A stretch of 64,000 bases of DNA from Rebecca billardiae RCC1528. Lineage: Eukaryota > Protista > Haptophyta. The stretch covers positions 558,001 through 622,000 of the forward strand of contig OZ251244.1 in the NCBI GenBank assembly GCA_965240325.2, read 5' to 3'. The notes under the pieces were generated by a model that worked only from the letters and a program-made list of their open reading frames with translations, did not search any database and was not told the origin of the DNA. Shown here one piece after another: positions 34,154-36,883 of the stretch. Position 1 is the stretch's first letter. Each line of letters starts with the position of its first letter. The position numbers and the translations under genes are program-made.

Positions 34154-35116
34154 TTAATGTCGCGTGTGCATGTGCCTCTGCGCGCCGCCGCGGGCGGGAG
34201 CGGCGCGTGCGGCGCGCGCGGCCGCGCAGCACCGTCAGTGAGCGCGCGCGCCGCGCCGGCACCGCGAGCAGCGGCGCGACGGAGCGCACGGTGGCAAATG
34301 TGTGCGCATGGTCGTGCGCGCACCTTCAAACTGTCAGCCCTAGTGAAGGCCTCGCCGCACTTCTCGCACACGTACGACCTCTCGCCCGTGTGCGTGCGCA
34401 TGTGCGACTGCACGCCGCGCCGCAGGGCGGGAGCGGCGCGCGCGGGGCGCGCGGCCGCGCAGCACCGGTCAGTGAGCGCGCGCGCTGCGCCAGCACCGCG
34501 AGCAGCGGCGCGGCGGAGCGCACGGCGGCATGGACGTGCGCATGGTCGTGCGCGCACCGTCAAAGTGCCAGACTGCGCAAAGTCCTTGCCGCACTTGTCG
34601 CACACGTACGGCTTCTCGCCCGTGTGCGTGCGCATGTGCTTCTGCACGCCGTGCCGCAGGCGGGAGCGGCGCGCGCGGGGCGCACGGCCGCGCAGCACCG
34701 TCAGTCAGTGAGCGCGCGCGCTGCGCCAGCACCGCGAGCAGCGGCGCGGCGGAGCGCGCGGCGGCATGGATGTGCGCATGGTCGTGCGCGCACCGTCAAA
34801 TTGCCAGAATCATTGAAGTCCTTGCCGCACTTCTCGCACACGTACGGCTTCTCGCCCGTGTGCGTGCGCATGTGCCTCTGCACGCCGTGCCGCAGGCGGG
34901 AGCGGCGCGCGCGGGGCGCGCGGCCGCGCAGCACCCGTCAGTGAGCGCGCGCGCCGCGCCGGCACCGCGAGCATCGGCGCGGCGGAGCGCTCGGTGGCAT
35001 AGATGTGCGCATGGTCGTGCGCGCACCCTCAATGCGCCAGGATCCGCGAAGGCCTCACCGCACTCGGGCCAGCCGCACCCGTACGGCTTCTCGCCCGTGT
35101 GCGTGCACACGTGCGC
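34154..35116 (-). repeat. Four tandem ~234-bp exon+intron cassettes, one zinc finger per cassette
   Basis: Exon ends at 34324, 34558, 34794 and 35027; introns of 146-152 nt all begin GTGCGCGCACGACCATGCGCAC and are highly similar. Confidence 0.92.
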
Positions 35117-36883
35117 CTGCGCACAGCGGACCAGCCGCCGCCACGATGGACGCGCGCGCGCATCGGCGCGCCAAGCGGCATGGGGCGCAGGTGTCAGAAG
35201 CTGCACATCGCCGCGCGCGCGCGCGCACGCCGCCACGCACGGCACGTACCCGCAAAGGCACAAGAGAATGGCTGCGGAAGCTGCAGCCCTTCCACGGGCA
35301 GCAGAAGGGCTTCCCGCTGCCGTCGTCCACGCGGCGCACGGAGCGCATGTGCGCGTCCGCCTCCGGCGTGGGCCGCATGATCGGCGGCGGCAGCGGCCCG
35401 GTGACCAGCTGCCGCGTGCCGCCGAGCGCCGCCGGCGCCGCCGCGCCGCGCGCCGCCGCGCCGTGCGCGGGCAGGCGCGCGCGCGGCGCGGCCGCCGCAC
35501 GCGCGCGCGGCACCGCGGCACCGCGGCGCCGCGCGACGCGCGCGCGGCCGCCCTCGTCGTCGCTGTCGTCGTCGTCGGAGCTCGAGCTCGTCGAGCCGTC
35601 CGAGTCGCTGCTCGTGCTGTTTGCCGACGAGCGCGAGCCCTCGCTGCCGCTGCTGCTGCCGCCGCTGCCGCGCGACTCGCTGTCGGACGAGCCGCCGTCC
35701 GACGCCGCGTCCGCGCCGCCGCGCGCGCGGCCCAGGTGCCCGGGCTGGTGCGCGCGCTCCACCTCGCAGTACGAGACGTTGGCGCGCGCGCGCGCGCTGC
35801 GCCGCGTCGCCTCGGCCGGCGCGGGCGGCGTGTTCTTGCGCTTGCGCCCGCCCGTCGCCGCCGCGCCGCCCTGCTCGCCCGCGTCGCCCAGCGCCGCGGC
35901 CGCGCCGCCGAGCAGCCCGAGCTGCTCGAGCATCGCGCGGTTCTCGTCGATCTGCGCGATCCGGCGCGCCTCGTACTCGGTGAGCGCGGGCTTCGCGGGC
36001 GGCGCGCGCGGCGGCAGCTGCTTCGTCTTGAGCCAGTGCTCCTTCGCCACGCGCTTGCGCTCCGTCGCCCTCGCCTCGTCCGCCGCCGTCTCCGCCTCGA
36101 GGTGGCGCGCGAGCGCCTCGGCGCTCGTGTCGCCCTCCGCCTCGGCCGCGGCGAGCGCGCGCGCCTCGAGCCGCGCCTTCTCGGCCGCGGTGCGCTCGCG
36201 AAAGAAGCGCTCGAGCTCGGGCAGCGCATCCTCGAGGCTCTGCTGCCACTCGAGGATGTGCAGCTTCTTCAGGTTGGCCATGCGCACCGTCGGCCTGCGG
36301 GAGCGCGTGCCACAGCGCGCGCGCGGCCCAGCGTGAGCGCGCGCGCGCATGCGCGCGCGAGCGAGGCCGTTGGAGACGCGCGGCGCTCGCACGCGCCGCG
36401 TGCGACGTGCGCGCGCGATGGCGCACATGAGCGGAAAGATGCCCTTCTCCTTGTCGCGCGCCATGGCGTGGAACTCGGCGCACACGCGCTCCCAGTAGAG
36501 TGGCGGATCCGGCTCCCTGTGCGCACGCGCGAGCGCGCGGTCGAGCGCGCGCGAGCGCGCGCGTCTCATCGATTTGCGCTCGGTGCGCGAGTCGCGTTGA
36601 CCGAGTTGGCGCGCACGCGGATCCGCGCATGCGTGCGCTGCGAGCGCGCGTGCGCGCACCAGTACTTGCAGCCGATCTCGAAGAGCACGTTGCCGTCCTC
36701 GAGCACGTCGTTCCACGTGAGCTTGCGGTCGCGGATGAGCTGCGAGATCGTGTCTTGGACGCCGGGCGCTTTGCGCGGCGCGAACTTGAGGCACCAGAGG
36801 ACTTGCTGCAGCTCGCCGATCCAGTTGGGCGGGCAGGTCGGGTCTGCGTCGAGGTCGATCGGCATGTCAGAACCCTTGGGCAT
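34154..36883 (-). CDS. Nuclear protein with five tandem C2H2 zinc fingers; exons 36883-36660, 36516-36427, 36294-35250, 35116-35027, 34877-34794, 34641-34558, 34407-34324, 34177-34154
   Basis: HTGEKPY linkers and CxxC...F.....L..H spacing restored by GT..AG splicing; [24 protein letters not shown] helix, RKRK NLS-like motif and Ser/Asp tract upstream. Confidence 0.88.

Follow-up and report, generated by a model that had tools for sequence, protein, structure and literature searches.

The window analysed here, 64,000 nucleotides of the haptophyte alga Rebecca billardiae RCC1528 (GenBank contig OZ251244.1, positions 558,001 to 622,000), has a GC content of ~70%, like the genome as a whole, and carries on its minus strand, at 34154-36883, a predicted eight-exon C2H2 zinc-finger gene. 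The subject of this analysis is the 3′ part of that gene (34154-35249), an array in which successive fingers fall on successive exons that are repeated in tandem together with their introns. We read the gene model exon by exon, taking the fingers in exon order; on this model, the coding sequence is 1725 nt long, and the gene probably encodes a C2H2 protein of ~574 residues with five fingers, F0 to F4.

Tandem Repeats Finder reports a period of 236, with 4.1 copies and 88% matches, at 34162-35114, and each unit, of 233-236 bp, consists of one intron and one finger exon. Each finger exon begins with the end of one finger (its last helix residue and two histidines), continues with a TGEKP-type linker, and closes with the two cysteines of the following finger and its helix positions -1 to +5. 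For instance, exon F1 (35027..35116, on the minus strand like all features that follow; 90 nt) supplies position +6 of F0, the linker, and finger F1 as far as +5. It is followed by exons F2 (34794..34877), F3 (34558..34641), and F4 (34324..34407), each of 84 nt, and by a terminal exon of 24 nt (34154..34177) that encodes RHMHTRH and then TAA, giving F4 its +6 residue and two histidines. The gene therefore has a repetitive exon-intron structure with one finger per symmetric exon (84 nt, in one case 90 nt, phase 0-0). All of the array introns are in phase 0 and lie between helix positions +5 and +6, which divides the helices of the window gene into DPGALR|R, DSGNLT|K, QSGTLT|S, and RADSLK|R. The first of them, i0 (35117..35249; 133 nt, GT..AG), stands apart from the tandem cassette, with 92-95% identity among the paralogues described below. 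The cassette introns are i1 (34878..35026; 149 nt, GTGCGCGCAC...GGCGTGCAG, with 94-95% identity to i2 and i3), i2 (34642..34793; 152 nt), i3 (34408..34557; 150 nt, with 97% identity to i2), and i4 (34178..34323; 146 nt), the most diverged of the four, with 88-90% identity to i1-i3. Beyond the stop codon, at 34044..34153, the 3′ untranslated sequence aligns to the cassette and represents a decayed further copy (..VCEVCGKEVAAPSHLR, then a degenerate intron start). The original prediction, which was made from the letters of the window, had described one-finger exon cassettes on this stretch; the exons of 90, 84, 84, and 84 nt, their phase, and the period of 236 bear it out, and the helix strings and the intron position are exactly those that it gave. 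It had also stated that skipping an exon keeps the frame, which holds as a matter of arithmetic for 84-nt phase-0 exons.

Several features suggest that the array introns are spliced as proposed. Each of the 13 introns at the three related loci has GT-AG ends and a CTGAC branch-point-like motif. The cassette introns, 123-156 nt long across the three loci, are not as a rule multiples of three, nor are the differences between their lengths. Read-through of i2 meets an in-frame TGA in CTGACTGAC, and the C-X2/4-C-X12-H-X3/4-H spacing is recovered only via the proposed exon joins. With these joins, F0 to F4 follow the classical C2H2 pattern in ligand spacing and in the conserved Phe and Leu: in exon order, the cysteines are spaced C-X4-C in F0 and F1 and C-X2-C in F2-F4, followed by X12 and by H-X3-H (H-X4-H in F4). 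Single exons also match the Pfam profile PF13465 (zf-H2C2_2), which extends from the second half of a finger through the first half of the following one; the match exceeds the 40-bit cut-off in F2 (44.0 bits) and F3 (42.9 bits) and falls below it in F4 (38.0 bits; PF00096 E = 1.2e-4) and F1 (20.5 bits; E = 6e-4). The splice sites themselves are uniform in that the cassette donors all read ..G|GTGCGCGCAC and most acceptors read GGCG(T/C)GCAG. We saw no extra finger exons inside the short introns at the three loci, a scan of the introns against Rfam returned nothing at E <= 0.1, and the fold energies of the introns were no better than those of shuffled sequences (z = -0.9, -0.6, and +1.5).

Upstream of the array, exon 3 (35250..36294) is an open frame encoding a low-complexity and coiled N-terminal region and then finger F0 up to helix position +5. 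It would be preceded by a probable exon 2 of 90 nt (36427..36516; ...GIFPLM), with an AG acceptor, a GTGCGCC donor, and phases that link exons 1 and 3 in frame, and by a probable exon 1 (36660..36883), open from an ATG at 36883 and ending in ...GCKYW in phase 2 at a GTGCGC donor. Thus modelled, the exons at 36883-36660, 36516-36427, and 36294-35250 join upstream of the array in consistent phases; in addition, exon 1 is 98% identical to its counterpart in the paralogue at C27:497 kb, and its donor and phases suit exon 2. A Pfam scan of the open reading frame of exon 1 (36569-36883) and of 344 of the 348 codons of exon 3, with the 90-nt exon 2 unscanned, gave a best E value of 0.34, and KRAB, SET, and SCAN domains were not found in the scanned exons 1 and 3. 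The N-terminal 344 residues had no relatives in a word-indexed protein search, and an exhaustive search found only a paralogue from the same genome, on contig C1, represented by an intron-keeping genomic Logan contig. The matches to a 243-residue read-through frame over two cassettes were all generic poly-zinc-finger proteins of animals, with 25-40% identity, and a related cassette was absent from them. The most likely function of the predicted protein is sequence-specific DNA binding; it would be a regulator specific to the lineage, with paralogues that have come to differ in target.

The variation is unevenly distributed over the cassette. Diversity was computed on seven internal cassettes from three paralogous loci, with the helix region taken as 24 nt (the +6 codon and codons -2 to +5). 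In this region, where 15 of 24 columns vary, the mean pairwise diversity is 0.357, compared with 0.082 in the intron (35 of 153 columns) and 0.073 in the framework codons (9 of 60 columns). The excess of variable columns in the helix is significant against the intron (Fisher p = 1.7e-4) and against the framework (p = 3e-5), and among 21-nt windows of the cassette, none exceeds a diversity of 0.15 except those overlapping the helix. By the Nei-Gojobori method, the proportions of nonsynonymous and synonymous differences (pN and pS) are 0.40 and 0.22 in the helix and 0.08 and 0.05 in the framework. In helix codons 24-28, variation is confined to bases 1 and 2 and never reaches the third; codon 26, for example, is AAT, ACT, AGT, CAT, or GAT. 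Even in F0, which is not repeated, the last nine codons show a pN of 0.36-0.52 between paralogues, whereas the 308 codons before the F0 helix show a pS of 0.016-0.046 and a pN of 0.015-0.034. Throughout, 13 of 13 fingers of the three recent copies retain their cysteine and histidine pairs, the Phe/Leu core, and TGEKP-type linkers. The comparison of contact-codon with intron divergence, which had been suggested along with the original prediction, thus came out in favour of its claim that a variable helix sits within a near-identical cassette.

The same codons also differ in composition. Among the helix codons of the window-gene family, the third base is T in 38, C in 10, G in 51, and A in 2, a GC content at third codon positions (GC3) of 0.60, while in the framework codons of the same genes, the counts are T 8, C 140, G 112, and A 0 (GC3 0.97; p = 6e-18 for helix versus framework). 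This is not a general property of recognition helices in this genome, given that the helix codons of 18 fingers at seven other C2H2 loci have T 4, C 68, G 67, and A 5, with a GC3 of 0.94. The variable codons had been described as AT-rich for the genome; more precisely, they are T-ending, T/(T+C) being 0.79 and A/(A+G) 0.04, and Leu at +4 is encoded by TTG in 11 of 13 fingers. It is possible that the bias stems from young AT-biased mutations in fast-turning codons that escape GC-biased conversion, and that A-ending helix codons are held down by tRNA supply. T-ending helix codons may mark very recent amino-acid turnover in GC-rich genomes, here against a background of 97% GC3.

A whole-genome DNA search with one cassette intron as query, also put forward with the original prediction, showed that the cassette is not unique to the window. 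There are ten strong copies of the intron: four in the window gene, three at C27:499.6-500.2 kb, and three at C38:3.0-3.6 kb. The two other loci are recent whole-gene paralogues with the exon-intron plan of the window gene, one of them (C27:497256-500360) on the same contig as the window gene and 92 kb away, and the other at C38:1785-3607. The similarity between the recent copies spans ~3.3 kb and has sharp ends, with flanks that lack homology, and no terminal inverted repeats were seen around it; a large segmental duplication was rejected as an origin, given that the similarity ends sharply ~520 bp upstream of the ATG and ~85 bp past the stop codon. The three copies differ in their cassettes. 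The window gene is intact and has five fingers, with helices ADPGALR, NDSGNLT, AQSGTLT, and TRADSLK from F1 onward; the C27 copy is intact and has four (TQPGHLK, NDSGHLT, and TRADTLM from F1 onward); and the C38 copy has four (AHSWALT, VQSSDLT, and AQSSDLT from F1 onward) and is missing its first exons. With a contig end 1.8 kb away and an AT-richer sequence adjoining it at C38:1-1800, the C38 copy may be subtelomeric. An older paralogue at C1:779261-780100, with ~74% identity, is limited to F0 and F1, and its two introns interrupt the helices at the corresponding positions, which indicates that the intron position is ancestral to the family and that the unit was amplified later. In this copy, a TAG replaces the Trp codon of F0, and the histidine spacing is broken. 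Its sequence, introns included, is also found on the Logan contig ERR14847148_20220 at 99.9% identity, so reads of the organism itself or of a very close one are publicly available.

Beyond the paralogues, the intron search returned one fragment and four GC-rich low-complexity matches. The fragment, C3:159525-159624, comprises the 3′ half of the intron and the first ~15 nt of the exon (RHMRT), with ~80% identity to the window cassettes, and it lies antisense within the intron of an unrelated gene, just upstream of an exon of this uracil phosphoribosyltransferase-like gene. A further stretch, C7:3016464-3017322, has 72% identity to the part of the gene that covers exons 1 and 2; no zinc-finger exon turned up within 7 kb of it, and it may be a relative of the N-terminal part alone. 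In the other C2H2 genes of the genome, each finger is complete and free of interruption, within a long open frame. The zinc-finger family is small, with three or four members, and apparently lineage-specific.

Comparisons within and between the genes point to gene conversion that homogenises the cassettes in part within each gene. Intron identity is 94-97% within one gene, versus 89-93% at the same position in different paralogues, and nine alignment columns carry variants common only to the cassettes of a single gene. In the C27 paralogue, the non-orthologous ND-type and TR-type cassettes share a block of ~70 bp that takes in the first codons of the exon and the intron's 3′ half. The helices, on the other hand, keep their positional identity across genes (NDSGNLT vs NDSGHLT, TRADSLK vs TRADTLM). 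At the same time, the order of helix types is ND-AQ-TR in the window gene, ND-TR in C27, and AQ-AQ in C38, and such differing cassette content is the expected outcome of unequal recombination between repeated introns. The decayed cassette after the stop codon occurs in 3 of 3 recent paralogues, which indicates that the array was once longer and was shortened by a stop in the linker region. These differences speak for part of a further claim of the original prediction, that of a modular exon-shuffling system: shuffling over evolutionary time agrees with the different cassette sets of the three paralogues and with the decayed cassette, while regulated exon skipping, a dedicated “system”, and the targeting of transposons found no support.

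The explanation that we favour, and which we regard as probable, is that the array grew by exon-intron duplication and was homogenised by conversion, with its contact residues under diversifying selection. In this account, the ancestral gene would already have had an intron inside each recognition helix, between +5 and +6. The unit of one intron and one 84-nt exon would then have been duplicated in tandem via unequal recombination, lengthening the array, and the gene would have given rise to copies in two or more further places. Introns, linkers, and zinc ligands would be held near-identical by gene conversion, both among cassettes and among paralogues, while the helix codons for the contact residues would escape homogenisation and be driven apart by diversifying selection, so that the paralogues are predicted, most likely, to bind different DNA sequences. 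The raised synonymous divergence of the helices fits helices that are older than their flanks, which argues for conversion of the flanks combined with diversifying selection and not for a burst of point mutations alone.

Some observations weigh against this explanation. The coding region before the fingers is near-neutral between paralogues, with a pN/pS of ~0.8-0.9 on 14-33 differences, and the helices have a raised pS as well (0.22 vs 0.05), which fits old helix segments escaping conversion; their formal ratio of nonsynonymous to synonymous divergence (dN/dS) is ~1.8, on few sites. The tests rest on a small sample of 13 related fingers, and the splicing, deduced from the DNA, and the expression are both predictions. 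In addition, two copies are damaged, C38 being truncated at its 5′ end and C1 containing a stop codon, so that some or all copies could be dying genes. The explanation is weakest in transcript support and in the low constraint on the part of the protein outside of the fingers. In one rival account, the genes are a decaying pseudogene family of recent dispersed duplicates under neutral drift, whose helices differ by old variation that outlived the conversion of their flanks. Such a family could well include a copy that has lost its first exons 1.8 kb from a contig end and another with a TAG in F0 and broken histidine spacing, and neither the pN/pS before the fingers nor the lack of relatives of the N-terminal part outside the genome in protein searches would be surprising. 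Nevertheless, we consider it improbable, as the window and C27 copies are free of stop codons and frameshifts across eight exons, the ligands, core, and linkers are kept in all 13 fingers and the GT-AG ends in all 13 introns, and the changes, unlike those of neutral decay, cluster at contact positions and are nearly all nonsynonymous, with third bases kept.

Another possibility is that the diversification is programmed, either through regulated exon skipping or mutually exclusive splicing or through targeted C-to-T mutation of helix codons, such that each gene has several specificities. The matching splice sites and symmetric exons mean that any donor joined to any later acceptor would stay in frame and would re-pair +6 with another helix. 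A cell that made such joins freely could, conceivably, obtain a set of proteins with varied fingers and re-paired +6 residues, perhaps with strand-biased mutation of the helices in addition, and this would amount to a splicing-based multiplication of DNA-binding specificities. Apart from the uniform donors, the mostly uniform acceptors, and the 84-nt phase-0 exons, the asymmetry of the helix codons would also suit targeted mutation, given that pyrimidine-ending codons end in T in 79% of cases and purine-ending codons end in A in only 4%. However, the T bias has a simpler possible cause in young AT-biased mutations within a patch that escapes GC-biased conversion, and neither a reverse transcriptase, nor a deaminase, nor a template repeat was seen at the locus. 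The helix types are, moreover, stably inherited between paralogues (NDSGNLT/NDSGHLT and TRADSLK/TRADTLM), which speaks for ordinary germline evolution, and we regard both programmed diversification and free joining of cassettes as unlikely. Least probable is the independent insertion of introner-like mobile elements into each finger, which would account for introns that are near-identical across positions and for the orphan 3′ half in the intron of an unrelated gene on C3, but which is at odds with a repeat unit that includes the exon (the orphan, too, carries the first exon bases), with diverged introns at the same positions in the older C1 paralogue, with the absence of visible terminal repeats and target duplications, and with strong copies confined to three paralogues plus the one C3 fragment; an introner family was, in fact, rejected by the whole-genome intron search, in which the weak matches on C33, C34, and C17 and at C38:486 kb are GC-rich low-complexity sequences without finger exons.

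Growth of the array by cassette duplication and conversion, which remains our preferred explanation, can be compared with three known systems. In the zinc-finger gene WT1, introns lie in or near linkers. As in the algal gene, consecutive C2H2 fingers fall on consecutive exons, the four fingers of WT1 being encoded by its exons 7-10 (PMC11807054). The introns of WT1, in contrast, are long and mutually unrelated, and the gene is old and conserved, with neither hypervariable helices nor cassette turnover. Given this example, a finger per exon is not in itself new, and the statement that animal arrays are normally a single exon, which formed part of the original prediction, is valid for KRAB zinc-finger proteins and is not general. 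In the open-access text, we did not find a description of a zinc-finger array grown by exon-plus-intron cassettes with an intron inside the recognition helix.

Most known examples of fast-evolving zinc-finger arrays come from animals, in which KRAB zinc-finger proteins track transposons and PRDM9 sets recombination hotspots. These are single-exon arrays, in effect coding minisatellites with 84-bp units. One study on such animal arrays describes concerted evolution that homogenises the repeat together with DNA-contact positions that are hypervariable and positively selected (PMC3890296). The algal genes resemble them in their tandem C2H2 fingers, TGEKP-type linkers, homogenised repeat, variable contact positions, and number of fingers varying between copies, and the excess of contact-position variation over a homogenised backbone that is typical of PRDM9 and KRAB proteins was found here as well (0.357 in the helix, compared with 0.073 in the framework and 0.082 in the intron). 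They differ in that the unit is 236 bp long and contains a spliceosomal-type intron in the recognition helix, instead of being an uninterrupted 84-bp minisatellite in a single exon, in that the upstream exons 1 and 3 have no KRAB, SET, or SCAN match, and in that the host is a GC-rich alga and not an animal, with a family of only three or four members. Thus, a unicellular GC-rich alga shows the same signature, but in an array built of exon-plus-intron units. If the genes are expressed, they would provide an independent case for studying which forces make DNA-binding specificity change rapidly in organisms other than animals, as well as a case for asking whether intron-mediated recombination eases the remodelling of arrays.

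The closest structural parallel comes from the brown alga Ectocarpus, in which Zambounis et al. (2012; PMC3341825) described ROCO-LRR and NB-ARC-TPR genes with one repeat per exon and exon shuffling. In both cases, the repeat is a short symmetric exon within a repetitive exon-intron structure, the number and order of repeats vary between recent paralogues, diversifying selection is seen or, for the haptophyte genes, suggested at ligand-contacting residues, and decayed repeat exons are present. In contrast to Ectocarpus, the repeat of the haptophyte genes is a C2H2 finger and not an LRR or TPR, the intron cuts the functional helix instead of lying between repeats, extra or antisense exons were not seen inside the introns, and the family is far smaller. 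The resemblance to both systems, which the original prediction had anticipated, divides along two lines: the architecture is closest to the repeat-per-exon genes of Ectocarpus, and the evolutionary pattern is that of PRDM9 and the KRAB zinc-finger proteins.

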